This document shows, in pieces, positions 24,633 to 61,833 of a stretch of 62,169 nt of DNA. Each line of letters begins with the position of its first letter. Position 1 is the stretch's first letter. Origin of the DNA: Octopus bimaculoides (Eukaryota); NCBI RefSeq assembly GCF_001194135.2, contig NW_026370633.1, positions 1 to 62,169 of the forward strand, read 5' to 3'. The translations under genes and the position numbers were made by a program. The notes under the pieces were generated by a model. That model did not search any database. It saw nothing but the letters and a program-made list of their open reading frames with translations, and had not been told where the DNA came from.

Positions 24633-24847
24633 CATGAGGGGGTGCTGAAAGGTCCCTGACTTTAAGAGTGTCACGAAAGACCTAGTTGGAGGTCCAGGGT
24701 TCTGAGTTCTTTTACAAACACTTTGGGACCACTGCAAATAAAGGTGTGAATCTGAGAGGGGTATATGTTGAATAAAATCGTAATTAACTGATCCTCCTGT
24801 ATTTTCGTTTACCCAAAGCCAGGAACTTCTTGGTATATACTCTTTGT
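24633..24847 (+). mobile_element. Mariner-derived MITE
   Basis: Left end catgagggggtgctgaaaggtccctgacttt, right end aaagccaggaactt..; retains KGVNLRGVYVE*, a mariner C-terminus-like peptide. Confidence 0.75.
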
Positions 24848-25026
24848 TGTGCAAGGATATATACAGAATATAACTGAATCAGCTGGTTATTCCAAAAGAG
24901 AGAAAGGGAAAGAAAAAGAGAGTGAAATAGAGAGAAAGAGAGAGGAGAAATAAAAAGCAAGAGAGAAAAGGAAGAGGAGATAAAGAGAGAGAGTAGTGCC
25001 ACGATTGAGCCCTGAAGCATACAAAC

Positions 25027-25173
25027 CTCATCTATAGGAGATTCTTCGATAAGTTTGGGAGCATCTGACGAAAGAATGCCATGCGTGGCCATCACGTAGA
25101 TTTTGTAAGCACCTCTGTTCTTCAAAGCCTCGGCTATTTTCACAAATGGTCTCACTTCATCCACCATATCGTC
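25027..25173 (-). CDS. PRPSAP: PRPSAP coding exon 8
   Basis: [49 protein letters not shown]; ttgcag / gtttgt; phase 0-0. Confidence 0.93.
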
Positions 25174-25254
25174 CTGCAATAATACACAACATAAAGATGT
25201 CAGAGAATTAACAAAAAACAATTAACGAATAAATGTTTGTTTTGTTAGTCAACC

Positions 25255-25770
25255 ATTTCGTGTTAATTTATGTTCCAAATACCAGCTTAACCAGGACAAA
25301 GTCATTTGAATAAATTCTTCATTACTGCCAAAAATTAATTGAAACAAAGGCAGCGTATTTCTACAGAAATATGGTAAAAAAAAGGCGTTAAAGTGATCTA
25401 AATTAAAACCTTCCAGCAAAATTTCCAAAAAACCAGTTTAATTACGACAAAGTTAATTGAAACAAAAGCTAAGAGAAGGTTTAAAGTAATTTAGATCAAA
25501 ACTTTCCTTCGAAATTTTATATTAATGTTAATTTATGCTCCAAACATTAGATTAGTAATGACAGTTTTACTAAATTCTTCGTTATTTTAAAAATTAATTG
25601 AAACAAAGGCAGGGTATTTCAACAGAAAGATGCTAACAGAAGGGTTAAAGTGATTTAAATCAAAACTTTCCTTCAAAATTTTATGTTAATTTATGTTCCA
25701 AACACCAGCTTAATAATGTCAAAATTAACTAAAAAATTTTGATTGGAAGGTTTTAATTGAGATCACTTTG
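25255..25770. repeat. Intronic AT-rich duplicated repeat
   Basis: tgttaatttatg(t/c)tccaaa at 25261, 25527 and 25684; aattaattgaaacaaaggcag occurs twice. Confidence 0.75.
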
Positions 25771-25807
25771 GGATAAGCTAGAATCGAAAAAGGTTGTTGC
25801 AACCTAC

Positions 25808-25878
25808 CACAATAATGGCGATTCGGCCTCCTACGTCACCAACCACATTTAGAGGGGGTTTTTCTTTGGCTTGTAGCA
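25808..25878 (-). CDS. PRPSAP: PRPSAP coding exon 7
   Basis: (M)[23 protein letters not shown]; ttttctgcag / gtaggt; phase 1-0. Confidence 0.93.
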
Positions 25879-25987
25879 CTGCAGAAAAGACAAACAGACA
25901 GACATAGAATGTGTGTATGATAATGGTGAATATTTGTAATGATAATGATGATGATGATAGTAAGAACATCTACAACGGAAGACGTAC

Positions 25988-26192
25988 TTGGCAGGTACTC
26001 CAGTTCGTAGATCAGCCGGCCGCGGTCCTGACCAGGTAAGGGGGGTGAGTTGCGGCCGTCCTCGCTGTTAGCCTCTTTCTCCTCACCATGGATCACAGCA
26101 ATGCCCAGGCCTAGACGCTCTGCATACGACGTGACACGCTTCACCGAATTTGCGTTGCGGGAGACGATGACGGCATTACGGTAGTCTGGGAT
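25988..26192 (-). CDS. PRPSAP: PRPSAP coding exon 6
   Basis: [51 protein letters not shown]..; contains the PRPSAP-specific insert (DGRxSPP); tttccag / gtacgt. Confidence 0.93.
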
Positions 26193-26251
26193 CTGGAAAC
26201 AACAGAGAAGAAGAAACGGTTGAAGAATTTGTACAAGAAATATATACAAGT

Positions 26252-26694
26252 GGCGCAGGAGTGGCTGTGTGGTAAGAAGCTTGCTTCCAAACCACATGGT
26301 TCCAGGTTCAGTCCCACTGCATGGCGCCTTGAACAAGTGTTTTCTACTAGAGATTTGGGCTGACCAAAGCCTTGTGAGTGGATTTGGTAGACAGAAACTA
26401 AAAGAAGTCTGTTGTGTGTGTGTATATATATATAAAAAGACGGAAACTGAAAAAAGCCTGTCGTATATATGTATATATATGTATGTGTGTGTGTCTTTGT
26501 TTGTCTTCCCAATATCGCTTGACAACCGATGGTGGTGTGTTTACGTCCCTGTAACTTAGCGGTTCGGCAAAAGAGACCGATAGAATAAGTACTAGGCTTA
26601 CAAAGAATAAGTCCTGGGGTTGATTTGCTCGACTAAAGGCGGTGCTCCAGCATGGCCGCAGTCAAATGACTGAAACAATTAAAAGAGTAAAAGA
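26252..26694 (+). mobile_element. SINE family A, full length, in a PRPSAP intron
   Basis: A-box tggctgtgtggt, B-box ggttcagtccc, tail gaaacaattaaaagagtaaaagag. Confidence 0.88.
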
Positions 26695-26764
26695 GTATAT
26701 ATATATGCACACAAACAAACAGCAAAAGACCCTCCAGTTTATGCCAGGGGTGGTAGTCCCTTAC

Positions 26765-26880
26765 CGATTCTATGATGTATTGAATGAGGAACGGTGATGC
26801 CCTTAAATTGTCTACAGGAACATTGAAGAACCCTTGGATTTCCTTCTGGTGTAGATCCATTGTGATGATGTGCGTGAACC
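26765..26880 (-). CDS. PRPSAP: PRPSAP coding exon 5
   Basis: (G)[38 protein letters not shown]; gtcctag / gtaagg; phase 1-0. Confidence 0.95.
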
Positions 26881-27039
26881 CTAGGACAGAGACACAGAGA
26901 AAGACTTTTGAAAAGATGGAGCGTGATGTGCATAAAATAGGGGACAGCAAGCCAAAAAGGGGTCAATGAAGAAAACGCTAAACAACAACATCACCAACAC
27001 ACTAGATTACAGCATAATACAAGAGAATAAAATTCCTAC

Positions 27040-27212
27040 CTGATCTCGACAACATGGTAGCCAAAAGCTTACAAGCAATGGATCCTCGCTTCCTCATCTT
27101 ACTTTGTTGTGAGTACGGCAGGTAAGGTAACACTCCGACTATGTTCCGAGCACAGCTCGTCTTACAGGCGTACGAGATAATCATTAGCTCCCATATGTCG
27201 TTGTTGACTTCC
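27040..27212 (-). CDS. PRPSAP: PRPSAP coding exon 4
   Basis: EVNNDIWELMIISYACKTSCARNIVGVLPYLPYSQQSKMRKRGSIACKLL..; KMRKRGSI is the PRPSAP signature replacing the catalytic PRPS loop (RQDKKDKSRAPI); ctacag / gtagga. Confidence 0.95.
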
Positions 27213-27249
27213 CTGTAGATGGACAGAAAAAAGATGTTTGTAGACTGAG

Positions 27250-27590
27250 TGAGTGTTATATACATTAATTTGTTAGACAGATAGACAGACAAGCAGACAG
27301 ACAGATAGACAGACAGATAGATAGATGGATGGATTGATGGATGGATATATAGATAGATAGGTAGGTAGATAAATAGACAGACAGAGATAGATAGATAGAT
27401 AAACAGACAGACAGACAGACAAGCAGACCGATAAACAGACCAACAGACAGACAAACAGACCGACAGTTAGATAAACAGACAGACAGAGATAGATAGATAA
27501 ACAGACAGACAGATAGATAGATAGATAAACAGACAGACAGATAGATAGACAGTTAGATAAACAGACAGACAGATAGATAGATAGACAAAT
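27250..27590. repeat. (GATA/GACA)n compound microsatellite (similar tract at 28910-29140)
   Basis: Directly visible. Confidence 0.95.
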
Positions 27591-28090
27591 GACTGAGACC
27601 TTCGGCAATAGGATGCGCTTGAGAAGAAAACCCATCAAGCCAAGTGAAGTCATAGTTGTGACAGATATGGGTGCCATGCAACTGGCACCCATTACACTCT
27701 TGGAGTGGTTGGGGTTAGGAAGGGAAACCAGCCATAGAAACCATGTCAAATCAGACTGGTGTCTGGCGCAGTACCAGCAACGGCCATGCTCAAATGGTGT
27801 TTTTTATGTGCCAACTGCACAGGAGTCAGTCCAGCGGCACTGGCAACGACCTCACTCGAATGTTTTTTCACGTCTCACTGGCACAAGTGCCAGTAAGGCG
27901 TGACTGGTAACGATCACGCTCAAATGGTGCTTTATACGTGCCACCGGCATGGAAGCCAGACAGCTGCTCTGGCAATGATCACGTTCGGATGGTGCTGTTA
28001 GCACTCCACTGGCACGGGTGCCAGTCATCGAATTTGGTTCAATTTCGATTTTGATTTCACTTGCCCCAACAGGTCTTCGCATAGCGCAAT
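27590..28090. mobile_element. Family B-related composite repeat
   Basis: cactcttggagtggttgg..ttaggaaggg plus repeated ctggcaacg..cacgctcaaatggtgc units. Confidence 0.6.
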
Positions 28091-28196
28091 TGGGACACCA
28101 TAGCACACACCGAAGAGACCCCGCCACACAAACACACTGTACATCAGAGACCACCATTACACACGCATATCCTCATACCAGAGATCACATACTTAC

Positions 28197-28263
28197 TTTG
28201 TTGCTGTCTGAATGATGTAGACATCTTTGCCTCGGACTGATTCTTTGATTTCAACATTGGTTT
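28197..28263 (-). CDS. PRPSAP: PRPSAP coding exon 3
   Basis: (E)TNVEIKESVRGKDVYIIQTAT(K); attgcag / gtaagt; phase 1-2. Not in the ORF track. Confidence 0.92.
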
Positions 28264-29168
28264 CTGCAATGACACACATACAAATATTTGGTGAGTGCTT
28301 TCTTTATTTATTATTCTTTATTATTGTTATTATTATCATTATTATTATTGTTATTTTTGTTGTAAGCATTTAGTACCTGGTATGGATGCAGGATTAACAA
28401 GTTTGCTTCATAATCATGTTGTTCCAAGTTCAATCCCACCACACAGCACTTTTGAACAAGCGCCATCTAATACAGCCCCAGACTGACAAAAACCTGAGGG
28501 TATAATAAAAGACCCTTGCCTAAGGTGTCACACAGTAGGACTGAACCTATAACCATGTGGCTTAGGAACAGACTTCTTACCACATGTATTTAATGTACAT
28601 AAATTGTTTACACATTAATGCATTATTTTATAAAGAAGTTCTTTTAATATAATTAATTTCAATTTAAGAAAAAGTAATTTTTAATTATCGTGTCTGTATT
28701 TATTGTGATATAAAGTTTGCTTCTCAACTACATCGTTCCAGTTTCAGTCCCACTACATGGCACCTTGGACTAAAGAAAAATCAGGTTAACCAAAATCTGA
28801 GGCTATAATAGAAGACATACAGGCTTGTCCTTTGCAGGTGCCGGTGCCACTTAAAATGCACTTGTGCATTTTATATACACACACACACATATATATATAT
28901 ATACAGAGAGAGAGAGATAGACAAATAGATAAAGAGATAGACAGACGGACAGATGGATAGATATACAGAGTGATAGATAAAGAGATAGATAGATAGATAC
29001 ACAGTGATAGATAGAGACAGATAGATAAAGAGATAGATAGACAGACGGGCAAATAGATAGATACACAGAGTGATAGATACAGAGGTAGATAGACAGATAG
29101 AGAAATAGATACACTGACAGACAGACCTGTAGATAGACAGAGAGGTAACTAAAAGGTATGGCACTTAC

Positions 29169-29221
29169 CTCTATCACTCTTGTGATACGCCCTCATGTCT
29201 CCCAGCTTGATACCGAGACGG
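29169..29221 (-). CDS. PRPSAP: PRPSAP coding exon 2
   Basis: (D)RLGIKLGDMRAYHKSDR(E); tttgtatag / gtaagt; phase 2-1. Confidence 0.9.
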
Positions 29222-29329
29222 CTATACAAAGAAGAAGAAAAAAAAGTATAAAAGACATCAGGACTGTGAGAACAGAGCTGCTACACAAGCAGAATAACAA
29301 ACACGGCCTATGGTTCCCTATGCTGGTGA

Positions 29330-29990
29330 CATGTAAGGAGCACCACCCAAATATGGTCGATGCCAGTGCCTCACCGACTGGGTCCCATGCCGGGGTGGCA
29401 CGTAAAAAGCACCATCCGAATGTGGTCGATGCCAGTGCCTCACCGACTGGCNNNNNNNNNNNNNNNNNNNNNNNNNNNNNNNNNNNNNNNNNNNNNNNNN
29501 NNNNNNNNNNNNNNNNNNNNNNNNNNNNNNNNNNNNNNNNNNNNNNNNNNNNNNNNNNNNNNNNNNNNNNNNNNNNNNNNNNNNNNNNNNNNNNNNNNNN
29601 NNNNNNNNNNNNNNNNNNNNNNNNNNNNNNNNNNNNNNNNNNNNNNNNNNNNNNNNNNNNNNNNNNNNNNNNNNNNNNNNNNNNNNNNNNNNNNNNNNNN
29701 NNNNNNNNNNNNNNNNNNNNNNNNNNNNNNNNNNNNNNNNNNNNNNNNNNNNNNNNNNNNNNNNNNNNNNNNNNNNNNNNNNTGGTCGATGCCAGTGCCT
29801 CACCGACTGGGTCCCATGCCGGGGTGGCACGTAAAAAGCACCATCCGAATGTGGTCGATGCCAGTGCCTCACCGACTGGCTCCCATGCCGGTGGAACGTA
29901 AGAGCACCCACTACACTCTTGGAGTGGTTGGCATTAGGAAGGGCATCCAGTTACAGAAACCTTGCCAGATTAGATTGGAGTCAGGTGCCC
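29330..29990 (+). repeat. 69-bp VNTR inside a family B element, spanning a gap
   Basis: ggtcgatgccagtgcc at 29355, 29424, 29784 and 29853. Confidence 0.9.
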
Positions 29991-30587
29991 ATGAGCCTGG
30001 CTAGGCTTTAAAAAGGGCGCATTTATTTTATTTTAGTGCGTGAGTACTATACGACTACTATAGCCACAATGCCACAAACCTGGGGCTATAGCCACTAATA
30101 CTACTACTATACTATACATTAGATAATGTAGTCCTAGATACACTATGCCTGAATAAAAGATGGGATGGTCACAGCTTGAACGTCTTTGATTATAGGTCAG
30201 TCTGGATCACGACTGACCTGGGGTTAAACAATAACAACGACATTACGATCCTTCAATCCGTTCGTTAGACAAACACAGACGAACGTCTCCCCTCCGCTTC
30301 CCCCCATCCACCTCATATCTTAACACAAAAGCCGGAGCCACCACGTGGGTGCCCTACATTCTTATTNNNNNNNNNNNNNNNNNNNNNNNNNNNNNNNNNN
30401 NNNNNNNNNNNNNNNNNNNNNNNNNNNNNNNNNNNNNNNNNNNNNNNNNNNNNNNNNNNNNNNNNNNNNNNNNNNNNNNNNNNNNNNNNNNNNNNNNNNN
30501 NNNNNNNNNNNNNNNNNNNNNNNNNNNNNNNNNNNNNNNNNNNNCAAAAAAAAACATTCTTTTATTATAGCGAGGGATGCGTTAGAC

Positions 30588-30863
30588 CAGGGGTTTTCAA
30601 ACTTTTTGACTTGCGGACCCCTTTATATTTCAGGCTTTACCTTAGGGACCCCATTATAAACGCTTATGAAATTTACACATAAATATTTGCTTAAAATAAC
30701 ATATGTTTTTACATTTATTTATTTAACAGTATTTAACAAATAGGTTTATTGTCAATTAAAAGATTTCGATTAAAAAAACATATATAAAATCAAATTGCCC
30801 ATAAAAAGTATTTGCTGTCCACGGACCCCCTGTGGTCCGCGGACCACAGTTTGAAAACCCCTG
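30588..30863. mobile_element. hAT-type MITE, 276 bp
   Basis: Perfect 16-bp TIRs CAGGGGTTTTCAAACT / AGTTTGAAAACCCCTG; 8-bp TSD cGTTAGAC / gGTTAGAC (7/8). Confidence 0.93.
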
Positions 30864-31968: not shown

Positions 31969-32027
<59 letters not shown>

Positions 32028-32315
32028 GCGCGTAAACACATACGGACACAGATATATGCATACAAACACACGCATAGATAATGGTAAATATACACGCACA
32101 TATATATGCATGTGTCCACCTACATAGACACATATATACACGTTTCATACACACACACGCACGTATACAGATAAATACATAATCGAGGTACATATACAAA
32201 AGTGCGCATATCTATATATGTATACACACACCTACGCACAAAGTACGTATACAAACATATGTAGGCAGAAACACAAACATATACACACGCGTACACACAC
32301 ACACATACTGGTATA

Positions 32316-32499
32316 TACGTGGGGGGGGGGGTACTGAAAAGTTCCTGGCTTTAAGGGTCTTGCGAATAGCCTAATTCTATAGAGGCCCAACTTTCTGAGT
32401 TCTTTTACTGAAGGACCGCTCCAATAGTTGTGTCAATTAAATGATCTTCCTGTATTTTTGTTTACCCAAAGCCAAGAACATTTCTGCACAACCTTCGTA
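32316..32499 (+). mobile_element. Mariner-derived MITE
   Basis: Ends tacgtgggg..gtactgaaaagttcctggcttt and aaagccaagaacatttctgcacaaccttcgta; TA at both ends; body similar to 24633. Confidence 0.8.
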
Positions 32500-32515
32500 T
32501 ATATATATATATACA

Positions 32516-32541
32516 CACGAGAGGGTGCTGAAAAGTTTCTG
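32516..32541 (+). mobile_element. Left end of a further mariner MITE, cut by a gap
   Basis: cacgagagggtgctgaaaagtttctg. Confidence 0.7.
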
Positions 32542-33136
32542 NNNNNNNNNNNNNNNNNNNNNNNNNNNNNNNNNNNNNNNNNNNNNNNNNNNNNNNNNNN
32601 NNNNNNNNNNNNNNNNNNNNNNNNNNNNNNNNNNNNNNNNNNNNNNNNNNNNNNNNNNNNNNNNNNNNNNNNNNNNNNNNNNNNNNNNNNNNNNNNNNNN
32701 NNNNNNNNNNNNNNNNNNNNNNNNNNNNNNNNNNNNNNNNNNNNNNNNNNNNNNNNNNNNNNNNNNNNNNNNNNNNNNNNNNNNNNNNNNNNNNNNNNNN
32801 NNNNNNNNNNNNNNNNNNNNNNNNNNNNNNNNNNNNNNNNNNNNNNNNNNNNNNNNNNNNNNNNNNNNNNNNNNNNNNNNNNNNNNNNNNNNNNNNNNNN
32901 NNNNNNNNNNNNNNNNNNNNNNNNNNNNNNNNNNNNNNNNNNNNNNNNNNNNNNNNNNNNNNNNNNNNNNNNNNNNNNNNNNNNNNNNNNNNNNNNNNNN
33001 NNNNNNNNNNNNNNNNNNNNNNNNNNNNNNNNNNNNNNNNNNNNNNNNNNNNNNNNNNNNNNNNNNNNNNNNNNNNNNNNNNNNNNNNNNNNNNNNNNNN
33101 NNNNNNNNNNNNNNNNNNNNNNNNNNNNNNNNNNNN

Positions 33137-33167
<31 letters not shown>

Positions 33168-33188
33168 TATGTATATGTCTCTACTCAC

Positions 33189-33307
33189 TCTGCTATAAGC
33201 TGAGCCAAGCCGGGATGCGAATTCCCTGCCAGAATCATCATGGGTCCTTTTTGGCCGAGAGAGCCCAGGTTGGAGGGCCGCGACACCACAACCTCTTGGC
33301 ATGCCAT
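33189..33307 (-). CDS. PRPSAP: PRPSAP coding exon 1 (start codon)
   Basis: MACQEVVVSRPSNLGSLGQKGPMMILAGNSHPGLAQLIA(D); donor GA/gtgagt; in-frame stop upstream; possible acceptor at 33317-33318; the downstream Met23/Met24 are alternative starts. Confidence 0.85.
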
Positions 33308-34350: not shown

Positions 34351-34374
34351 TGCCTTCAATAATTTTTTTTTGTT

Positions 34375-34766
34375 TACTTGTTTCAGTCATTTGACTGTGG
34401 CCATGCTGGAGCACCGCCTTTAGTCGAGCAAATCGACCCAGGACTTATTCTTTGTAAGCCTAGTACTTATTCTATCGGTCTCTTTGCCGAACCGCTAAGT
34501 TACGGGGACGTAAACACACCAGCATCGGTTGTCAAGCGATGTTGGCGGGGGACAAACACAGACTCACACACACACATACATACATATATATATGTATATA
34601 CATATATACGGTGGGCTTCTTTCAGTTTCCGTCCACCAAATCCACTCACAAGGCTTTGGTCGGCCCGAGGCTATAGTAGAAGACACTTGCCCAAGGTGCC
34701 ACGCAGTAAGACTGAACCCGGAACCATGTGGTTGGTAAGCAAGCTACTTACCACACAGCCACTCCT
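34375..34766 (-). mobile_element. SINE family A, full length
   Basis: High identity to 51630 and 53520 and to the reverse complement of 26252. Confidence 0.88.
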
Positions 34767-37651: not shown

Positions 37652-40600
37652 TCAGTTGCTCCCAACGACGATGTCGTACCCGGCCTCTTGCGCCTCCCTC
37701 CTGACTCTGCCCCCAGCCCCGCCTACCATGTCCATCTCCATCATCATCATCATCATCAGCGAATGGGTGCGCATGTGACGACTGAGGGTCCTCGACTCGG
37801 TGAAAGTCTGGCTGCAGTAGACGCACCGGTACGGCTTCTCGCCGGTGTGCGTGCGCACGTGCTTGGTGAGGTTGCTGGAATCGGAGAAACGCTTCTGGCA
37901 GAAGTTGCACGAGAAGAGCTTCTCGCCCGTGTGAATACGGATGTGCTTGGTGAGGTTGTCCGACCGGGAGAACCATTTGTGACAGTGCGGGCAAGGGAAA
38001 GGCTTAAGACCAGCGTGGACCTTCAGGTGACGTTTCAGATGACTCGGTCTGGTGAACATTTTACGACATTCATACTGGGGGCAAGTGTATTGCTTCACGG
38101 TGGACTGAGCACCACTGTGGCGGGGCAGCTGCTGCTGTTTCCTCTGCAGAGCCTTTATTAAGCTTGTGGTCGTTGAAGGTGCAATAAGGTCAGCTGGCAT
38201 CATAGCTGTTGCTGTTGTTGATGCGGTTTGCTGATCTTGTTGTTGTTGTTGTGGCCAGTGACGCTTCGTTGTGTCAGCATCAAAAGAAGGTTTATCCATC
38301 TGAAGTCCACAGTTGCGTGCAATGATGTCGATGGCAGAGGTATTTGCGGCTTGACCTTTGTCAGCAAAGGAAGCGAGATTCAAAGTGTGATTTAGGCTGT
38401 TCAACAGAAACGGCTGACCACCAGAAGAGGGAGAATTTGAACGGTAGCTGATTTCGTCAGCAGGTATGGAAGGAAATGAAGATAAGGGTAACGATGACGA
38501 TAATAATTCATGGTGATCGTCATTAAGGTCGGAAAATGTTACCTTCCGATCAGCATTGTTGTCTAATTGATCAGTGAAAACATTGCCGAGGAAACGAGAA
38601 GCATTGTGCTTACTCTTAAGGGACAAATCCCTTTCAATTAGCATTTCCCTGACATTATTCTGGGCCTGGAGTTGATTACCAGACAATAAGGATGCTAGCT
38701 CATCAGTGTTAGATATCGCTTCGGCAAACTTGGACAAGTCTTCGGTCTTAATTTTGGCATTGATTGGAACCATTGCCGAGCAGTCAGAGTCTGTGGCAAG
38801 TTCTGGTTCCACTTTAATGTAAGGTTTCGGAAAATCCAGATTATTGTCAGCTGGCTGAAGATAAGACAAAAGGGACAAAGAGTTTGGTAGGGGCTGGCTA
38901 AGATTGTCTTTCGAGGTCCTGTTTTCCTGGTTGAGTTCCTTGCAGTTAACAGCGTCCATTGATCCTGTAGGAGTCACTTTTGCGGTCATCAGAGACGACT
39001 GTTTGTTACCACCGTGCATTGTATTGTTACCGTCATGTTGTATGCATTGGTCATTGTTATAAGACGAGGTGTTGTCCGGGCGGTCAGCCATGATGAGGTC
39101 AGCAGCCACTTGGTCCGACAAATTCTGTGACTTCCTTTCAGCAGCGTCGACAGAGATGTGGTTGTCAATGTCCTCGTAGTCTTCACAGATGCCTGCTTCG
39201 TTCACCCCGGCACTTAAGGTCATGGTGACATCGGACGGAAGACAATCCATGTTTGTTGTCGCTGCAGGCTTCCATGCCGCAGTCACCGAGTGGTGAAGGA
39301 GCTCGTCGCACCATTTATCTCCCTTTTGCAGAAGCAGTTGCAGAGTCTCGTCGCTGAGGGAGCTGAGAAAATCAAGCATTGCATCGCGGAACTGTCCGTC
39401 ATTTTGGTTCGACTCCCATTGAGACGGAGGAAATTTGTTAGCCCTAGAGACATCTCCATTGCTGTTGTCAACCTCAAACCCACCCTCGGGCAATGACGAC
39501 ACCAATATATCGCTTGCGCAGGGTTGAGACATCTCCTCCTCCTCCTCCTCCTCCTCCTCCTCCTCGAGTTTCACATTCACGCTCTCAAAGACGTCCTTCA
39601 GATCTTCGGTCTGTTTCATTATTACGTTATCAGCGTGATGCGTGTTGGTGGAGCCAGTAGGAACTACCGTCATTGTGAACCCTAAATTTTTCGTGCTGTC
39701 CCTGTAGTTAGAACCATCTGACATCAAAGGAACACCACCATCACCATCACCATCATCATCATCATCATCGGAAAGAGACATTGCAGAATTAGAATTTGAA
39801 TCCGAAATACAAATGACATTGTTGGTTTTGCATTTCTGGTCTGCAACAAGGGTCGATTCGGGACCACCGTTGCCACCAGAGAAATAATTCTTATTCCGGA
39901 ACTCGACAAACTCATCAAAAAGTAGAAATTCTTGAATGCATTTCTCAGCCTCAGGTTGTTTGTCAGGGACCATTGCGGTTCCTTTCCGAAAATTTCCGTT
40001 CCCATCATAGTAAGAATTCGATGGTTCCTGATCTGCGTTGCTGTAAAATCCTGCGACGTCAGTGTGGTGGGCATCTTTTGGATTTCGGGTTGTATTAAGC
40101 AGGTCATAAGAGAGACGAACGCCTTGGGATTTGAAACTGATGTCTTTGAGTCCATCGATGGTATTCTCAGAGGAAGAAAACTTGAGGTCAATATTTTTAA
40201 GTTCTTCGGCGGCATCGATGGCAGATGGGAATTTGAAGTTGATGTCTTTCAGTTCTTCGTCATCGAGAGCGGAAGGAAATACAAAATTCTCATTCAGGGA
40301 AACTGTACCAGCTAAGAGCTCACCATTATCAGAAGAGGCTGACCTCTGGAATGGTTCGGAAGGGTTAAGACTTCCATCCTCGACGACATCTTTGCCCTCT
40401 GCAACTACCACCATGGGTCTTTCTGTGGTGTCAACCTCCTGTTTGATATCAGCCCTACTAATACCCCCGACAGAACCACAACTGTTTCCCGCTTCAAACT
40501 GACCCCTCCCCGGTGGTATCTCACGTACATGAGCAGCGAGGGAAGGGATGAGAGGCGCACCGCCGTCTCCACCCCTCCATTGAAACAGCTCCATCATTGA

Positions 40601-43600
40601 GCCAGAGGTGGTGGGGGTACGATAGCCATCGTCTCCTTGTCCGTCAGGTTCTGGTGTCTTCGGTTCCTGTTTCATGGCACTACCATCAGGCAGTAGAAAT
40701 TCTTGCTTCACAGCCAAAGACAAGTTCTCTTGGAAAGGGTCAACCAAGGATTTCCTGGTAAAATTCTCTGCGGACGATTCCTGAAAATCGCTATTGTTGT
40801 TGTTGTTGTTGTCATTTATTGTGCTGTCACTGTTGTAGTTTTTATTATTATTATTGCTACAGCTGTTGACATTAATGGTGGTGGTGGTGGTGGTTGTTGT
40901 GGTACTAGCAACAGTGGTGACCATATTGTTCCTTGGAGCACTGACAAGACTGCTGCTTCCATCTGCTGTACGTAGCTCATCTCCACGGTTACTGCGGTCG
41001 TGCACGTCGTCCGGTTCGCAACATATTTCGGCCGTTGTTTCACCTTGTCTTTGCACCTGACCATTGGGGGAAGACACAGACAGAACCAACGCTGCCCGTT
41101 CTGAGCCTGGGTCCTGACCAGAACTGGCTGGACCAAACTCAGTGCCCGGTGACGAAGAAGCTGAAGGCAGTGGGGATGAAAACTGCAAATGCCAAGGTGA
41201 TGACGATGACAATGATGACCGCTCACTAGATACGACACTTGATCTAGTTTTTGCTTCGCTCTGCAGCACATCCAACTGATTCTGCAACGGTAACTTTGCA
41301 GAGTCTTCTGAGATAGACTCGGTCAAATTATGGCTAGCAGAAGTAATATTGGAGTCACTTGAGCCACTGGTGTTAGTCACAGCACTGGTCAAGCTCTCAG
41401 TCTCAGAGACAGCACTGGACAATATATCGGTTTTGGAGACAGAACTAATTGAATTGTGGTGACCAAGGGGAATATTGGTGTTACTTGAGCCATCACTATT
41501 AGTGATGGCAGTGGTCAAGTTTTCAGTATCAGAGACAGTACTGGACAGTATGCTGTTGGCTTTTGAAACAGAATTGGTTAAATCGTTTCCATTGGTCAAG
41601 CTGTTGCCATTGGAAACAATATTATCGAAGCTGTTGACATCGGAGATGGCACTGTCCATCTCATCGTCATGGGAGACGGCGCTGGTCAGCTCATTGCCAC
41701 CAAGGGAAACGGTATCAGTGAAGGTTTTAGCGTTGCTGCTACTGCTGCCTCGACAGTCTCTGAGGAGGTGGTCATTAAACACGTTGAGGTCGTGGATGAG
41801 ATTTCCGCACTCTTTACACCTGAACATCTCGCCTGTCGTGTGTAGTTTCAGGTGACGTGTTAGCTCCTCCACACCGGAGAAGAATATCTGACACCGGGAG
41901 CAATGAAAGAGACGGTTTCTCGGGTGATGGTCACTATCATGAAGACGACGATGTGTACGATGATGTTGTTGGTGCTGCTGGCTCTGATGACTACTATCAT
42001 TTTCATTATCGTTATCGTTATCATCATCACTGTTGTTAATATAAGGATGAAGGTGATTGTGATGATGATGAGGACTATAGCGGTCACTTGTATTAGGATT
42101 ATTATTGCTGTTGTAGAGATACTCATCCATTTCAGTTTCCATCTCCACTTTGAACCCACCGACAACTGTCAGGGTAGCGTTTCCTACAGCCTCATCTTCC
42201 TCTTCCTGATTCCCATCAACATCTTCTTGTTCTAATACTTCTTGCTTGATGTAATCAAGCATAAAGGGACTGACATTACAAAGGGATTGGCAATTAGCAT
42301 CATCTGGTATGGCAAGTGAAGATGCACTACCTGTCTTGCTGCACATGGTTCCTGAGCTAGTTTCTCTGGAAAAGGACATTGGTGAACATATGTTCTGTTG
42401 AGAGGAAATTGGGGCAGTTTGACCATGTTCCGACGAACCAGTCTGTTTGTCCTCTCCCACGTCATCATCCTCTTTCACCTCCTCCTCCATCTCTTCATCA
42501 TCTTCCTCTCCGTCTTTTATAGTTGGCGAGGCAGCAGTGATGGTGGTTATATGGAACCTGTAGATGTGGTTGGCAAGGGTGAACTCATCGAGAAATACCT
42601 TCCCACACTGGCGGCACCGGTGTAACTTGTCTCGCAGCTGCTTCTTGAAACGCTGCAACAGGGCAGTAGGCCCAGAGCCAAATGTCTTCTTCAGAGCTGA
42701 GGTTGCATTCTTAGCAGATGACGAGACAGATTGCAATGAAAGTGATAACAATGATGATGATGATGATGGTGGTGACGGTGGTATCACAGAAATGGTAGTA
42801 GTAGCAGTAGTAGTAATATTAGTAGTACCAATGGCAGCCCTAGCTACAGCAGCAGAAATGCTTCTTAAATCTGTTGTTGATGAGGACGGCACTGAACAAG
42901 GTAGCGAAGGAAGATGTTGTTGTTGTTGTGGTGGTGGTGGTGGTGACGGGGATGTTGTTTCTGACTGAAGTAGTGTCTTCAACTGCTGCGGAGACTGGCC
43001 AAGTTTAGCATGTGTGAGTAAATGGCGACACAGCGCGATCGAGCTGTCAAAAGACTTTGAGCAGATCATGCACCGAAAGGGAGACAACTCTGTAGACGGG
43101 GACAGCAATGGTGACCTGCTCTCCTGCTGCTCTTGGTTTTGCTGTTGCTGTCGTGACAGGAAGCAGGGGTGTTCATAATTGCTATTGTCGTCATCTCCTC
43201 CGCTGTCATGGTGTGCTGCTTCCAGCAAGAAACGTTTATGGTTGTCATGTTTTCTGTCATTATCATCGTCATCATCTCTTTCACTGCTTCCTGTGGACGT
43301 GTGCGGTGGAAAGCTGTTGTCTTGGTTACTGTTGCTGTGGCTACCACTCCTGCTACTATTGCTCTTATTGGATGCAGTTGCACCATCTGCAGCTGCTGCC
43401 GCTGCGCGGGCATGCGTGCGCAAGTGCTTGGTGAGGTTGCTGGAATCGGTGAAACGCTTCGTGCAGATGCTGCACGAGTACCGCTTGTCGCCTGTGTGAA
43501 TGCGCACGTGCTTGACGAGGTTGTCCGACCGGGAGAACGCTCGGTCGCAGTATGCGCATCTGAACGGCTTAATGCCGGCATGAATCTTCAGATGTCGGTT

Positions 43601-46600
43601 CAACTGTGTCGACTTGGAGAAATGCTTCGAGCACACCGAGCAGGCATGCACTAGGTGGCGCCAGCGGAGATGTTGGGTGAGCTCGAGGGCCGACGAGAAC
43701 GAAACCGGGAATGAAGATGCAGAGGGCGATGCTGACCCCTTGCAGTACGAACAGGAAAATTCTTTATTTCCATTGCCTTTCACACTTCCAGCTTTCTTAT
43801 CAGCTGCAGCGGAACTGGTCAAATCTGCAGCGGAAGAACTAGTAGTAGTAGTAGGAGGAGTCAGAGTAATAGTAGTAGTAGTAGTAGTAGTAGATGTAGC
43901 AGAGTCAGAAACAACAGTATCAGGAACTACTGAGATTACAGGAGAATTAGAATCTACAGCAACAGCAGTAGAAGTAGTATTGAGTGCAGCGGAGGTAGCA
44001 GTAGAGATGGCAGCAGAAGCAGTTGTGGATGAAGTGTGTGTAGCAGCGGTACTGCCTCTACTGCTACTAGTGGTAACAATAGTAGTTGTAGTGCTACTAC
44101 AGCTGTTATTACTGCTACTATTACAACTACTAGTGCTCTGGTGGCTGTTATTATCATGATCATCATATTCAGAAGTGGTAGTAGTAGCAGTGGTAGTAGT
44201 AATAGTGGTGGGAGCAGCAGTTGTGGTCCTAGTTTCGGCGTTAACAACTTCAACGTCCTGGGTCTCTTTGACACTGGAACCTTTTGTCAAGAGACCAATA
44301 GCTGAGTTGTCTCCCTTGCTGAAGTCTTTCGACGACGCAGTGTGGACGTGTGATGGAGAAATTCGTATTGAGTCGTCGTGGTTCGCTGAGCGATCGTGTG
44401 GTGGCGTCAACGCTTCCTTCTTCACCGTGACTTTCGCTTCTGAATCCATGGCGACACGGGAAACGGGCAGCGTCGGTGTTTGTGCCGATGGCGTTGAGGG
44501 AAGCGACACTGATGTCGAAGTCTCCTTCTGCTGTGTCGTACTAAAATTTCCCTTATCAGTGGGTGAGGCCCTATTGGAAACTTCCATACGGCTCACAGAA
44601 CCAAACCCTGCCACTTGGCTATGATCACCGCCATCATCTGCCACAGAGACTAGCGTCTCCCTTGTCTCTGTCTTCAAAACAACACCCCGGGGCACTGCAA
44701 CAGAGCTATACTGATCGACCACACTGGTACCAACATCATCATCATCATTATTAACATCATCAGTAAGAACTATAGTGCTTTTAGCAAAGATTTTGGATTT
44801 GCTTGAAGAAATCTGATCCACAGACATCAAATTCTGGAAGGATCTACCGGTAGATATACCACCGACGGCCCCTTCTTTTCTTTTTCGGTCTCGACAGATT
44901 TGGGGTTCTTTCACTTCTTGTTTGATGACCCTTCGAAAGTCACACCCTGATACTTTACCGATATTGCTCAGGATTTTGGCGACAATTGCATCGACTTCAA
45001 CAGTGGAATCGTTACTACTAATTACCGTTAATTTCCCCGTTTCTTCTTCTTCTTCTTGCTGTCCTTGTGTTCCTTTTTCCTTGCGGAGAGTTGAACCAAA
45101 ATCCTTACCGGCGCTGTGTTTGTTTCCTTGCCGTCTTTTCTTCTTCACCATTCCGAGCGCATCAAAAACTTCTCGGTCACCATTTTGTGACAACCCTGTT
45201 AAATCCTCTGCGCTTAATGTAATGCCATCCAAAACATTCAGCCCATGCTGCAGCAACATTGAATTCCCTGGATCTTTGATGCTGTCCCGTTTCTTGTTAT
45301 CCTCCATGTCATTATCCTCGATCTCACTATCAGACAGTATTATCTCCTGTTTCAGTTTTGGCGCCGATGGATTTACGACCATCACCGAGGAAACGGGGTT
45401 CCCTGCCGACAACTGACGACGACGATCAGGATTTAGTCTCTGGTTATCTTGTGTCATCGTGCGATGGTCTAACTGTGGTTGGCCGCCAACAAGTCTCGCG
45501 GAGAGCAATCTCTGCTGCATGAGATCAGTCTTATTCTTACTTCGGTTTGGTCTCTGGTTCCGATCTTGCGCCGGACATTGTCTCCGATGCTTCGACAGTT
45601 GGACACTGGAACTGAAGGACTCTCCACAGTTCTTACACTCAAGGCGTCGTCGGATGTGACATTTCAGGTGATCCGCCAATGCTAAAGCCTTCGGAAACGC
45701 TGCCTTGCAATAGAGGCACTCATATGGGAGGCCTGCCGATCCTACGTCAAGGTCTTTCAGGCTTGTTGCTCCGCCGACCGTTGATGTTTGGAATAAATCC
45801 ATACTACCATGGTTTTCCGACTGCCTCCTCCTTACATGGATCTTTGACACATCCTCGCTACTGTTTCCCAACAATGTGTTTATACGATTAACTTGTCTCA
45901 GATTATCATCATCATATTCATTCTTTATGCGGATCGGGGCCACGTCCTCTCCCTCTTCTGCACAGTCGTCTACGTGTCCCTTGACGTGCATTTCTAACGA
46001 GGTTCTGGAGAAAAATTGCATGCCACAATAACTGCACTGGAACGTTATCGGAAAACGGTTACGGGCCCTGCCTAAACTGTTCACGTGATGCAGTCTGTCG
46101 ATGGAATGACTTGAGGTGGGCCTAGATGAACCAGAAGCTTTCCGGTTGATTGGATTGGGTGAAAGTGTGGTGGCATTCGCAGAATATGAAAGTACTTGAT
46201 CAAAATCAAAACTGACATGGTTCGCTGATCTTGTTCTGTTCCGTTTTGACTTCATCTTACTAATATCACTACTACTACTACTACTACTACTGCTACTAGT
46301 GTTATTACTATTGTACCCCTGGATGTTTTCATTGGTTTGCGACAGTTGTCTTATGATGTGATCAGTTCTGCTGAAGACATCCGTTGCTATGGGCAGCGTC
46401 GTGTTCTTCGGTGGGGCCTTTACGATCTCCTCGTCTTCTCCGTCGGACCATTGCAAAAGATTCCCTGTATACGAAGACTTGCTTGCAGCACCTCCTGCAT
46501 CTGGTCCTAGCAATCGCGCCTCATTTGAGGGTTCACCAATTGCGCTGAGAATCCCCCTTGCGGTTGCCTCTGACTTACTAACCGACGGCAGCCGTGACCG

Positions 46601-47359
46601 AGGGTGCATTTCCAGTTGCGATTGCAACTGCGCACCTTGCAGATTTGACACTGCTGTTGTCGCGGTGGTGGTGGTCATCGTTGGAAATGACCTCTCTTTA
46701 TTGATAATATGGAGGATGTTTTGCATTTGGAGTCGTCTCTGCACATCTGCAGCAACAGCAGCTGCGTCACTCAGTGACAACAGCGACGCCGTGTCGCCAC
46801 TGACGTCCATGTTGCTTCCACGACAGTCATGACCGCCAACGGAGAGAGTGTCACGGAGTGCAACTTCGCCACTTCTGTTATCAGTACTGCTACCACCGCC
46901 GCCGCTACCACCATTGCCATCGTCGGCGCCAACAGTGCTGCCATTTCCGTCGGACACGCCGTGGGTCAACAGGTGGCGCCGGAGGGTGTCCGACTTGCGA
47001 AACGTCTTCGAGCAGAGCGTGCACGTGTAGCGCCTCGTGCCCGCATGCGTGCGCATGTGCTTGCTCAGGTTGCTCGAGTCGGTGAAGCGCTTCAGGCAGA
47101 ACTCGCAGCCGTAGCGCTTGTCACCTGTGTGAATGCGGACGTGCTTGATCAGGTTGTCCGACCGGGAGAACGACTTGTGGCAGTACTTGCACTCGAACGG
47201 CCGGAGACCAGAGTGAATCTTCAAATGCCTGGCCAGATGGCTGTACCGGTCGAAGTCCTTGCTGCAGTACTGGCATTTGAACTGACGCACCTTCGAAGAA
47301 ACAATGGCATCGTTAGTGCGTTCAATGCCAGATACTGCACTCTTAGACAGGGAATCCAT
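37652..47359 (-). CDS. Giant single-exon-ORF C2H2 zinc-finger protein (~3235 aa, ~19 fingers in three homologous clusters plus scattered fingers)
   Basis: Uninterrupted 9.7-kb ORF in a stop-rich genome; clusters at 46961-47281, 43412-43648 and 37763-38089 with HTGEK/DK-type linkers. First in-frame ATG is 47359; the 47413 start in the track is a TTG. Confidence 0.9.
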   Translation of the reverse strand: MDSLSKSAVSGIERTNDAIVSSKVRQFKCQYCSKDFDRYSHLARHLKIHSGLRPFECKYCHKSFSRSDNLIKHVRIHTGDKRYGCEFCLKRFTDSSNLSKHMRTHAGTRRYTCTLCSKTFRKSDTLRRHLLTHGVSDGNGSTVGADDGNGGSGGGGSSTDNRSGEVALRDTLSVGGHDCRGSNMDVSGDTASLLSLSDAAAVAADVQRRLQMQNILHIINKERSFPTMTTTTATTAVSNLQGAQLQSQLEMHPRSRLPSVSKSEATARGILSAIGEPSNEARLLGPDAGGAASKSSYTGNLLQWSDGEDEEIVKAPPKNTTLPIATDVFSRTDHIIRQLSQTNENIQGYNSNNTSSSSSSSSSSDISKMKSKRNRTRSANHVSFDFDQVLSYSANATTLSPNPINRKASGSSRPTSSHSIDRLHHVNSLGRARNRFPITFQCSYCGMQFFSRTSLEMHVKGHVDDCAEEGEDVAPIRIKNEYDDDNLRQVNRINTLLGNSSEDVSKIHVRRRQSENHGSMDLFQTSTVGGATSLKDLDVGSAGLPYECLYCKAAFPKALALADHLKCHIRRRLECKNCGESFSSSVQLSKHRRQCPAQDRNQRPNRSKNKTDLMQQRLLSARLVGGQPQLDHRTMTQDNQRLNPDRRRQLSAGNPVSSVMVVNPSAPKLKQEIILSDSEIEDNDMEDNKKRDSIKDPGNSMLLQHGLNVLDGITLSAEDLTGLSQNGDREVFDALGMVKKKRRQGNKHSAGKDFGSTLRKEKGTQGQQEEEEETGKLTVISSNDSTVEVDAIVAKILSNIGKVSGCDFRRVIKQEVKEPQICRDRKRKEGAVGGISTGRSFQNLMSVDQISSSKSKIFAKSTIVLTDDVNNDDDDVGTSVVDQYSSVAVPRGVVLKTETRETLVSVADDGGDHSQVAGFGSVSRMEVSNRASPTDKGNFSTTQQKETSTSVSLPSTPSAQTPTLPVSRVAMDSEAKVTVKKEALTPPHDRSANHDDSIRISPSHVHTASSKDFSKGDNSAIGLLTKGSSVKETQDVEVVNAETRTTTAAPTTITTTTATTTTSEYDDHDNNSHQSTSSCNSSSNNSCSSTTTTIVTTSSSRGSTAATHTSSTTASAAISTATSAALNTTSTAVAVDSNSPVISVVPDTVVSDSATSTTTTTTTITLTPPTTTTSSSAADLTSSAAADKKAGSVKGNGNKEFSCSYCKGSASPSASSFPVSFSSALELTQHLRWRHLVHACSVCSKHFSKSTQLNRHLKIHAGIKPFRCAYCDRAFSRSDNLVKHVRIHTGDKRYSCSICTKRFTDSSNLTKHLRTHARAAAAAADGATASNKSNSSRSGSHSNSNQDNSFPPHTSTGSSERDDDDDNDRKHDNHKRFLLEAAHHDSGGDDDNSNYEHPCFLSRQQQQNQEQQESRSPLLSPSTELSPFRCMICSKSFDSSIALCRHLLTHAKLGQSPQQLKTLLQSETTSPSPPPPPQQQQHLPSLPCSVPSSSTTDLRSISAAVARAAIGTTNITTTATTTISVIPPSPPSSSSSLLSLSLQSVSSSAKNATSALKKTFGSGPTALLQRFKKQLRDKLHRCRQCGKVFLDEFTLANHIYRFHITTITAASPTIKDGEEDDEEMEEEVKEDDDVGEDKQTGSSEHGQTAPISSQQNICSPMSFSRETSSGTMCSKTGSASSLAIPDDANCQSLCNVSPFMLDYIKQEVLEQEDVDGNQEEEDEAVGNATLTVVGGFKVEMETEMDEYLYNSNNNPNTSDRYSPHHHHNHLHPYINNSDDDNDNDNENDSSHQSQQHQQHHRTHRRLHDSDHHPRNRLFHCSRCQIFFSGVEELTRHLKLHTTGEMFRCKECGNLIHDLNVFNDHLLRDCRGSSSSNAKTFTDTVSLGGNELTSAVSHDDEMDSAISDVNSFDNIVSNGNSLTNGNDLTNSVSKANSILSSTVSDTENLTTAITNSDGSSNTNIPLGHHNSISSVSKTDILSSAVSETESLTSAVTNTSGSSDSNITSASHNLTESISEDSAKLPLQNQLDVLQSEAKTRSSVVSSERSSLSSSSPWHLQFSSPLPSASSSPGTEFGPASSGQDPGSERAALVLSVSSPNGQVQRQGETTAEICCEPDDVHDRSNRGDELRTADGSSSLVSAPRNNMVTTVASTTTTTTTTTINVNSCSNNNNKNYNSDSTINDNNNNNNSDFQESSAENFTRKSLVDPFQENLSLAVKQEFLLPDGSAMKQEPKTPEPDGQGDDGYRTPTTSGSMMELFQWRGGDGGAPLIPSLAAHVREIPPGRGQFEAGNSCGSVGGISRADIKQEVDTTERPMVVVAEGKDVVEDGSLNPSEPFQRSASSDNGELLAGTVSLNENFVFPSALDDEELKDINFKFPSAIDAAEELKNIDLKFSSSENTIDGLKDISFKSQGVRLSYDLLNTTRNPKDAHHTDVAGFYSNADQEPSNSYYDGNGNFRKGTAMVPDKQPEAEKCIQEFLLFDEFVEFRNKNYFSGGNGGPESTLVADQKCKTNNVICISDSNSNSAMSLSDDDDDDGDGDGGVPLMSDGSNYRDSTKNLGFTMTVVPTGSTNTHHADNVIMKQTEDLKDVFESVNVKLEEEEEEEEEEEMSQPCASDILVSSLPEGGFEVDNSNGDVSRANKFPPSQWESNQNDGQFRDAMLDFLSSLSDETLQLLLQKGDKWCDELLHHSVTAAWKPAATTNMDCLPSDVTMTLSAGVNEAGICEDYEDIDNHISVDAAERKSQNLSDQVAADLIMADRPDNTSSYNNDQCIQHDGNNTMHGGNKQSSLMTAKVTPTGSMDAVNCKELNQENRTSKDNLSQPLPNSLSLLSYLQPADNNLDFPKPYIKVEPELATDSDCSAMVPINAKIKTEDLSKFAEAISNTDELASLLSGNQLQAQNNVREMLIERDLSLKSKHNASRFLGNVFTDQLDNNADRKVTFSDLNDDHHELLSSSLPLSSFPSIPADEISYRSNSPSSGGQPFLLNSLNHTLNLASFADKGQAANTSAIDIIARNCGLQMDKPSFDADTTKRHWPQQQQQDQQTASTTATAMMPADLIAPSTTTSLIKALQRKQQQLPRHSGAQSTVKQYTCPQYECRKMFTRPSHLKRHLKVHAGLKPFPCPHCHKWFSRSDNLTKHIRIHTGEKLFSCNFCQKRFSDSSNLTKHVRTHTGEKPYRCVYCSQTFTESRTLSRHMRTHSLMMMMMMEMDMVGGAGGRVRREAQEAGYDIVVGSN

Positions 47360-61830: not shown

Positions 61831-61833
61831 TAT

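Follow-up and report, generated by a model that had tools for sequence, protein, structure and literature searches.

The 62,169-nucleotide stretch of octopus DNA analysed here (the window, from Octopus bimaculoides) most probably holds two ordinary and unrelated things side by side, a conserved multi-module C2H2 zinc-finger (ZNF) gene and a few old MITEs, the identity between the site predicted for the fingers and the tip of the MITE family being a coincidence. This coincidence was noticed because the ZNF and the MITEs share one window. The original prediction had tied the two together, proposing that the protein recognises integrated mariner ends. The analysis adds the annotation of an uncharacterised, strongly constrained three-module giant octopus ZNF, and an age for a mariner-type MITE family, which predates the split between two Octopus species. 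The gene lies on the minus strand, with most of its fingers grouped in modules:

37652-47359, minus strand: giant C2H2 zinc-finger protein, a single uninterrupted ORF of 3,235 aa from the ATG at 47359 to the stop at 37652
46961-47275, minus strand: module 1 (F1-F4), helices RYSHLAR, RSDNLIK, DSSNLSK and KSDTLRR; identical in O. sinensis
43412-43642, minus strand: module 2 (F1-F3), helices KSTQLNR, RSDNLVK and DSSNLTK
43072-43010, minus strand: lone finger after module 2
37763-38083, minus strand: module 3 (F1-F4), helices RPSHLKR, RSDNLTK, DSSNLTK and ESRTLSR; identical in O. sinensis
41753-46036, minus strand: six scattered C2H2 fingers (46036-45974, 45718-45656, 45637-45575, 42616-42551, 41902-41840 and 41818-41753)

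The 18 C2H2 fingers (pattern C-X2-4-C-X12-H-X3-5-H) are spaced by long low-complexity stretches rich in Ser, Thr, Asn, Asp and Glu. Pfam PF00096 matched 11 stretches of the protein (E = 2e-65), which places it in the C2H2 class. Over the whole protein, at E <= 0.01, Pfam returned zinc-finger families only, with no KRAB, FiNZ, ZAD, BTB or SCAN domain and no HTH or transposase family. The three modules are paralogues sharing 63-66% identity; their F2 and F3 helices are constant, and module 2 has a deviating F1. The linkers of module 3 are of the canonical TGEKP type.

The only clear relative of the ZNF is Octopus sinensis LOC115225209, which NCBI models as a gene with two isoforms and which is ~85% identical in our own alignment (80% over 99% of the length by BLASTP). 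Of the two isoforms, X1 has an exact product on record and X2 has none. The O. sinensis model begins at the same Met, and in the window an in-frame stop lies 17 codons upstream of this start. The ZNF is single-copy in each of the two syntenic loci, and its 9.7-kb ORF, free of gaps in the window, is open in both species. At a dS of 0.41, dN/dS relative to O. sinensis was 0.23 over the whole ORF, 0.28 for the sequence outside the fingers and 0.01 within the three modules, which are 100% identical between the species. That the ORF stems from faulty annotation or assembly, or belongs to a pseudogene in decay, its predicted site then being meaningless, might be argued from the gap-rich assembly (17 gaps here), from the mostly low-complexity protein and from an exact-product look-up in which the window ORF had no record. 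This idea is refuted for practical purposes by the ORF open in two species and its dN/dS; with zero gaps in the ORF and a two-isoform gene model in O. sinensis also against it, we grant it almost no probability. The ZNF is a real, constrained gene and not an artefact.

None of the three flagged gaps falls inside the ORF (37652-47359, zero N). They are confined to the non-coding stretch that separates the ZNF from a PRPSAP-like exon, and across each of them order and orientation are collinear with the O. sinensis locus:

29452-29782: gap; both flanks carry an identical 98-nt stretch and map to the same O. sinensis segment, so that it is probably an unclosed overlap
30367-30544: gap; flanks only ~18 nt apart when mapped to O. 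sinensis
32542-33136: gap; interrupts MITE3 (below) after 26 nt; the O. sinensis counterpart is 1.37 kb and includes a complete MITE

Beyond the O. sinensis orthologue, a full-length homologue search returned generic poly-ZNFs only. Module 3 gave generic matches at <=57% identity, an exhaustive HMMER search with module 1 was dominated by poly-ZNFs, and a PDB sequence search with the ZNF yielded generic C2H2 matches only, a Zif268 DSNR variant among them. A search with a conserved non-finger region gave zero matches, using a tool that seems biased to candidates of similar length.

The helix contacts on which the predicted site rests were confirmed in the translation: F1 carries R,S,H,R in modules 1 and 3 and K,T,Q,R in module 2, F2 carries R,D,N,K and F3 carries D,S,N,K. 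The F4 fingers of modules 1 and 3 had been omitted from the original prediction. Read through the finger code, F3-F2-F1 of modules 1 and 3 are predicted to select 5'-KAC KAG GGG-3'. In both modules F1 (R(-1), H(3), R(6)) followed by F2 (R(-1), D(2), N(3)) forms a pair of the Msn2/4 type, and Msn2/4 bind AGGGG. Module 2 departs from this pair at F1, where Gln at +3 predicts A instead of G as the middle base and thus GAN instead of GGG. Since this F1 differs, the code does not predict that three modules read the same tip, and that part of the original claim gained no support. Each predicted triplet has precedent, both in engineered modules (RSDNLVR for GAG, R..H..R for GGG and D..N..R for GAC; PMC5260015) and in the DSNR variant; the 5'-G specificity of F2 and F3 would be weaker because their +6 residue is Lys, not Arg. 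The finger code performs best in the Zif268-like three-finger class. Across natural ZNFs, the measured motif agreed with the code prediction in 11/236 cases, i.e. 5% (PMC10547256).

The MITEs are a few kilobases from the ZNF, within the non-coding interval that reaches from it to the PRPSAP-like gene downstream:

24633-24845, plus strand: MITE1, ~213 bp; left end TA followed by CATGAGGGGGTGCTGAAAGGTCCCTGACTTT
32316-32499, plus strand: MITE2, 184 bp; left end TACGTGGGGGGGGGGGTACTGAAAAGTTCCTGGCTTT, right end (reverse complement) TACGAAGGTTGTGCAGAAATGTTCTTGGCTTT
32516-32541, plus strand: MITE3, first 26 nt only (CACGAGAGGGTGCTGAAAAGTTTCTG), the remainder lost in the gap 32542-33136

The elements occupy introns and intergenic DNA beside genes. 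At the right end of MITE1 the inner repeat AAAGCCAGGAACTTCTT is retained and the terminal ~15 nt are degenerate. An alignment of nine ends from both species gave the consensus YACGAGGGGGTGCTGAAAAGTTCCTGGCTTT, with ~30-nt inverted repeats bounding short non-coding elements of 182-217 bp; the window has two copies of the core pattern, where 0 are expected. Compared with the Hsmar1 repeat, the MITE repeat scored 21 in alignment (shuffles 13.9 +/- 3.0, p = 0.03), a modest likeness, and it has no similarity to Mos1. No transposase motif or autonomous partner was found within the window. Public metagenome scans with the repeat patterns and a literature search for the repeat string each returned 0 matches. 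For nearby repeats, a tRNA-derived origin was rejected, ARAGORN detecting no tRNA.

Orthologous MITE copies are ~79% identical between the species, which is neutral-like. MITE2 corresponds to O. sinensis L001 28838-29019 (left end TACGAGGGGG; 79% identical), and MITE3 is probably orthologous to L001 28378-28594, GAGAGGG being common to both. Between orthologous copies the tips kept 25/27 positions, not significant against the 79-84% background (p = 0.07-0.17). Judged from these alignments, the MITEs are old and decay at their tips like neutral DNA, and at least two of the three inserted before the split from O. sinensis.

Four MITE ends were found where the original prediction had placed them (24633, 32316, 32499 as reverse complement, and 32516), and, as it had noted, none is perfect. 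Against KACKAGGGG, the left end of MITE2 (TACGTGGGG, then an expanded G run) agrees at 8/9 positions, and the left end of MITE1 (CATGAGGGG), the right end of MITE2 (TACGAAGGT) and the left end of MITE3 (CACGAGAGG) at 7/9 each. A fifth end, which had gone uncounted, is the right end of MITE1 (~24845, reverse complement, AAAGAGTATATACC...); it shows no match whatever. The tip consensus itself held in part. YACGAGGGG is independently backed by the O. sinensis MITE2 orthologue (TATACGAGGGGGTTGCTG), and the inferred ancestral tip is right because this orthologous copy reads exactly TACGAGGGG. The consensus probably does not begin with the TA target duplication, as had been supposed: since TA followed by YAYGAGG recurs in four ends (MITE1-L, MITE3-L and O. 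sinensis B-L and B-R), the leading YA is most simply element sequence, with the TA duplication before it. TA adjoins the termini of MITE1-L, MITE2 and O. sinensis A and B, and CA precedes MITE3-L; as the flanks are (TA)n microsatellites, TA at the termini is expected anyway.

The code-predicted 9-mer does equal the ancestral tip of the MITE family, exact in O. sinensis, and the fit is somewhat better than base composition explains. Ranked by a crude matrix built from the approximate finger code, MITE ends fell in the top 0.03-0.06% of the window and at ranks 1 and 8 in O. sinensis; five of the nine ends placed within the best 0.06% of positions overall, and the tip of the O. sinensis MITE ranked first of 109,516, the best single site in 55 kb. 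Column-shuffled matrices did as well as the code matrix in 0.5-1.1% of cases, in a comparison picked after the fact and made on ends that all derive from one consensus. G-richness or composition as the sole cause of the high ranks was dropped, ~1% of column-shuffled matrices equalling the result. The match sits exactly at the transposon tip, a functionally special place.

Counts of the motif were at chance. Sites within one mismatch of KACKAGGGG numbered 17 in the window (18.1 expected) and 19 in the O. sinensis locus (24.9 expected), so that the predicted motif is enriched in neither, and 3/36 of these near-matches are MITE ends (1 in the window, 2 in O. sinensis). ACGAGGGG was observed once in the window against 0.46 expected. 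The exact GACGAGGGG at 17202-17210 on the plus strand was confirmed as the sole exact copy in the window; its surroundings are unremarkable, and we judged it a chance occurrence. Resting as it does on an approximate code, the match between tip and 9-mer is most likely a single post-hoc coincidence at the level of the consensus.

If the giant ZNF were instead a dedicated host factor for integrated mariner ends, it would act by KRAB-ZNF-like silencing or by blocking transposase access, its modules would engage both inverted repeats, and modules 1 and 3 would be expected to bind NACNAGGGG. The identity of the 9-mer with the ancestral tip, present exactly in O. sinensis, speaks for this, as does a match that beats ~99% of column-shuffled motifs; octopus ZNFs as a class have, moreover, been computationally predicted to match TE consensus sequences, those of DNA transposons included (PMC10547256). 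However, the corollaries of a KRAB-like role that were examined gained no support. The protein has no repressor or effector domain, and its three modules of 3-4 fingers with scattered fingers form no long tandem array. The contact residues are frozen rather than diversifying in a gene that is single-copy in both loci, and with modules 100% conserved at the dN/dS and dS given above no sign of an arms race is visible. Neither locus shows enrichment of the motif, the copies nearby are ancient and in decay, and the link was noticed post hoc through co-location in one window. The fit of fingers to tip is also strained: module 2 F1 predicts another triplet, the fourth finger of modules 1 and 3 would need to contact TA and the variable flank, a preference not predicted from its residues, and tip position 1 is C or T, yet Lys at +6 most favours G. 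We consider it very unlikely that surveillance of TEs is the role of the ZNF, and improbable that the protein binds MITE ends at all. Similarly doubtful is the narrower proposal that modules 1 and 3 read the outermost 9 bp (YACGAGGGG) of the mariner/MITE family, the tips serving as genomic targets either for non-KRAB capping or silencing or as TE-dispersed sites of a multivalent looping factor.

Transposons commonly disperse transcription-factor sites. The ZNF could accordingly be an ordinary transcription factor whose G-rich site the MITE family happens to carry, intact copies then acting as TE-borne sites in gene regulation with no surveillance involved. The same tip match would follow, the position of the MITEs in introns and intergenic DNA by genes would suit it, and the spread of such sites by transposons has been discussed for C2H2 proteins (PMC12513265). 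But the exact 9-mer is already gone from most copies here, and the tips are not significantly better kept between orthologues than the background, which makes this reading unlikely too.

In the preferred reading, that of unrelated neighbours, a lineage-restricted, strongly conserved single-exon gene encodes a giant nuclear C2H2 protein with three paralogous DNA-reading modules at its N-terminus, middle and C-terminus. Each module is an Msn2/4-like pair (R..H..R + RSDNL) extended by a D.S.N finger, and the modules are joined by disordered linkers of >1,000 residues, with six scattered fingers. Such a protein would most likely work as a transcription or chromatin factor that is multivalent and sequence-specific. 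For modules 1 and 3 the target would be a G-rich stretch of ~9 bp like (G/T)AC(G/T)AGGGG, and for module 2 a related one ending in GAN, so that the protein could bind grouped sites with high avidity or link sites that lie far apart. The three old, decaying Tc1/mariner-type MITEs would have no relation to it.

Were the link to the MITE tips true, this would be the first case of an invertebrate ZNF of non-KRAB type that targets the extreme end of a DNA transposon, and a concrete ZNF-TE pair to test for cephalopods, whose genomes abound in C2H2 genes and repeats. As it stands, the value is modest and lies in the constrained three-module giant ZNF and in the dating of the MITE family. The Msn2-like finger logic of the ZNF yields a testable predicted site, and the case illustrates the ease with which a finger-code prediction can be fitted post hoc to nearby sequence.

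Among known systems, the KRAB-ZNF/TRIM28 proteins of tetrapods and the FiNZ-ZNFs of cyprinid fish are C2H2 proteins proposed or shown to recognise TEs. They combine an N-terminal effector with fingers in long tandem arrays, contact residues that diversify and paralogues in large, fast-evolving clusters, whereas the octopus ZNF has no effector domain, modules of 3-4 fingers, a single copy and invariant contacts. SETMAR is the one host protein for which genome-wide binding to integrated mariner inverted repeats is well documented, through its Hsmar1 transposase DNA-binding domain (PMC9062482, PMC8327481). SETMAR uses the transposase's own paired helix-turn-helix domain and recognises the inner 19 bp (GGTGCAAAAGTAATTGCGG) instead of the outermost tip of the repeat; the octopus ZNF, in contrast, has no helix-turn-helix or transposase-derived domain and is not of the SETMAR type. 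The MITEs themselves recall human MADE1, derived from Hsmar1, in being short (~180-215 bp in the octopus elements) and in their ~30-nt inverted repeats; they too are flanked by TA, which (TA)n surroundings would supply anyway. Their repeat core, GGTGCTGAAAAGT..TGGC, is modestly similar to that of Hsmar1, GGTGCAAAAGT..TGCGG (p about 0.03 against shuffles), but the outer tips differ (YACGAGGGGG versus TTAGGTT).

HIVEP/Schnurri and ZEB1/2 are likewise very large proteins, whose paralogous finger clusters stand far apart and read similar sites. Their finger sequences differ from those of the octopus ZNF, for which searches gave generic poly-ZNF matches and no sequence relationship. The modules share the canonical three-finger architecture of Zif268/EGR1 and its engineered variants (DSNR; the Barbas and Sangamo GNN modules), in whose code D(-1)S(2)N(3) specifies GAC, RSDNL GAG and R.H.R GGG; unlike Zif268, the octopus ZNF has Lys instead of Arg at +6 in F2 and F3. 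Msn2/Msn4 (STRE, AGGGG) are stress factors of fungi, small in size and with just one finger pair, at the C-terminus. This pair has the same contacts in the same order as F1 and F2 of modules 1 and 3, which supports the predicted (G/T)AGGGG core. The octopus ZNF, by contrast, is an animal protein of 3,235 aa that carries the module in triplicate, with a third finger (DSSNL) to lengthen the site, the likeness being that of the generic C2H2 fold.

The giant C2H2 zinc-finger gene of this region (ZNF) is genuine, and the residues with which its protein would contact DNA are frozen. It encodes a protein with 18 C2H2 fingers, on which Pfam detected zinc-finger families and nothing else. The only close relative of the long ORF is its Octopus sinensis orthologue LOC115225209; BLASTP aligned 99% of its length at 80% identity, and our own alignment gave ~85%. 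The ORF and its three finger modules are placed as follows:

47359 to 37652, minus strand: ZNF ORF, 3,235 aa
47275-46961, minus strand: finger module 1
43642-43412, minus strand: finger module 2
38083-37763, minus strand: finger module 3

The modules are paralogous (pairwise 63-66% identical). The F2 and F3 helices, RSDNLxK and DSSNLxK, are invariant across all three, and F1 reads R..S.H..R in modules 1 and 3 and KSTQLNR in module 2, so that the helix residues listed in the original prediction were right; modules 1 and 3 also have a fourth finger (F4), which it omitted. Compared with O. sinensis, the whole ORF has a dN/dS of 0.23 and its non-finger part one of 0.28; in the three modules the ratio is only 0.01, despite a dS of 0.41. 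After the last finger, the C-terminus (window 37652-37760, minus strand) carries a Met-rich run, LMMMMMMEMDM; isoform X2 of O. sinensis has a different tail, with …GRASCSERM at its end. The difference is consistent with an alternative 3' exon far downstream, which the 35-kb extent of the gene in the orthologous locus of O. sinensis (L001) implies.

Under the canonical code, with fingers read antiparallel, the site predicted for modules 1 and 3 is 5'-(G/T)AC (G/T)AG GGG-3' (KACKAGGGG), which F4 would carry on into the element flank. For module 2, with Gln at +3, the predicted last triplet is GAN, not GGG. The PDB matches included the Zif268 'DSNR' variant, which reads GAC, and analogy with Msn2/4 would give AGGGG for the ZNF fingers. 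Engineered modules concur triplet by triplet: RSDNLVR with GAG, R.H.R with GGG and D..N..R with GAC (PMC5260015). Code predictions of this kind often fail: among 236 human KZNF motifs that had been measured, only 11 fitted theirs (PMC10547256).

The site had been proposed to match the ends of mariner-type mini-transposon copies (MITEs), which were found where and as originally described:

24633-24845: MITE1
32316-32499: MITE2
32516 onward: MITE3, interrupted by a gap

The four ends on which the proposal was built (CATGAGGGG, TACGTGGGG(G)n, TACGAAGGT and CACGAGAGG) each agree with KACKAGGGG at 7-8 of nine positions, none of them exactly (0/4), and the degenerate right end of MITE1 had been left out of the count. 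The ancestral tip deduced from them, YACGAGGGG, was independently confirmed in O. sinensis, where two MITE copies occupy the syntenic place: copy A, the MITE2 orthologue, starts TATACGAGGGGGTTGCTG, containing an exact TACGAGGGG. Taking the leading TA of the 9-mer for the target duplication was a mis-assignment. Because four ends read TA-YAYGAGG, the YA is most simply taken as element sequence, with the duplication in front of it. TA flanks and ~30-nt repeats, with a core resembling the Hsmar1 repeat in support (alignment p ~0.03; GGTGC..AAAAGT..TG.G, PMC9062482), suggest a Tc1/mariner-type MITE. When up to three mismatches were allowed, the repeat core of the MITEs was found twice (0 expected), and no transposase partner was seen in the window. 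(TA)n tracts flank all MITE insertion sites and most gaps. Orthologous copies are ~79% identical, a neutral-like level; the insertions are therefore older than the species split and now decaying. Their tips are conserved at 25 of 27 positions, which is not significantly above background.

The surrounding DNA is eukaryotic and AT-rich, with many repeats and many gaps. Window ~25,000-52,000 is collinear, in reverse orientation, with L001 on chromosome CM016885.1, which places the window in an Octopus genome other than that of O. sinensis. In both loci the downstream neighbour of ZNF is a PRPS-associated-protein-like gene, represented in the window by an exon:

~25030-25190, minus strand: PRPS-associated-protein-like exon (O. 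sinensis neighbour downstream of ZNF: Pribosyltran_N / Pribosyl_synth)

The MITEs of the window sit in non-coding DNA between this exon and ZNF; those of O. sinensis lie inside the called range of the PRPS-associated-protein-like gene. None of the 17 window gaps falls inside the ZNF ORF. Three flagged gaps all lie in non-coding DNA between ZNF and the same exon, the sequence across each keeps the O. sinensis order and orientation, and the reading frames are independent of all three. The gap at 29452-29782 is bordered by two identical 98-nt stretches (29354-29451 and 29783-29880), both of which fall on a single O. sinensis segment; it is probably an unclosed contig overlap. Only ~18 nt separate the flanks of gap 30367-30544 (178 N) in O. 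sinensis, and gap 32542-33136 (595 N), which cuts off MITE3, has a 1.37-kb counterpart there with a complete full-length MITE; both estimated sizes are at odds with that species. Exact duplicates also occur across gaps 54645-54654 (171 nt) and 8863-9648 (105 nt). Other repeats in the window are:

14024-14346, 26252-26700, 34373-34766, 51638-51990, 53522-53957, 61703-61865: abundant repeat, ~350-450 nt
1066-1217, 3703-3943, 23302-23720, 27771-27993, 29783-29988: second dispersed repeat family (GGTGGCACGTAAAAAGCACC…)
27259-27618, 28843-29135: long (GATA/GACA)n-type microsatellite arrays

The abundant repeat, which has many counterparts in the O. sinensis locus at 77-93% identity, is probably a SINE; ARAGORN found no tRNA gene in the window. 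The second family has numerous copies in both octopus loci, and one copy abuts a duplicated gap flank.

Exact or one-mismatch occurrences of KACKAGGGG number 17 in the window against 18.1 expected and 19 in L001 against 24.9 expected, and only 1/17 and 2/19, respectively, fall at MITE ends. The sequence around the exact site at 17202 is unremarkable. Near-matches are not peculiar to the mariner-type MITE, since one-mismatch matches occur in other repeat families, namely GACGAGGGT (window 15534, L001 25206) and TACGACGGG (window 51868 and 53797). Scored with a crude code matrix whose weights we chose ourselves, the MITE tips rank 34, 35 and 61 of 106,144 window positions and 1 and 8 of 109,516 positions in L001. 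Only 0.5-1.1% of column-shuffled matrices fitted the nine ends as well, and G-richness was therefore rejected as the sole cause of the match. As the nine ends descend from one consensus, the match is one coincidence, not nine. It came from scanning a 62-kb window with many repeat families and other features, and we estimate its post-hoc probability at between ~0.002, if TE termini alone would have counted, and ~0.4, if any repeat position would have.

The best explanation, and in our judgement a probable one, is a coincidental match: ZNF would be a multi-module C2H2 factor of an ordinary kind, under strong constraint and with a predicted G-rich site, adjoined by old mariner-type MITEs that lie in non-coding DNA toward the neighbouring gene. 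That the protein binds MITE tips at all appears unlikely, and the originally proposed role in TE surveillance as a KRAB-ZNF-like factor is very improbable. Four features would be expected of such a factor (an effector domain, a long finger array, rapid turnover and contact residues that diversify), and ZNF showed none of them. Engagement of the same tip by three modules, also part of the proposal, is not what the code predicts, given the KSTQLNR helix of module 2, and Lys at +6 most favours G, yet tip position 1 is C or T. The original observation stands in part: the fingers, the MITE ends and the ancestral tip hold, but no MITE end in the window matches exactly, one end went uncounted, the TA was mis-assigned and module 2 is different.

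Targeting of TEs by octopus ZNFs, DNA transposons included, has already been published as a statistical prediction (PMC10547256), and the idea is discussed in PMC12513265. In contrast to ZNF, in which nothing resembles a helix-turn-helix domain, SETMAR, the known host binder of integrated mariner ends, reads the repeat over its inner 19 bp, via the transposase's own domain of that type.
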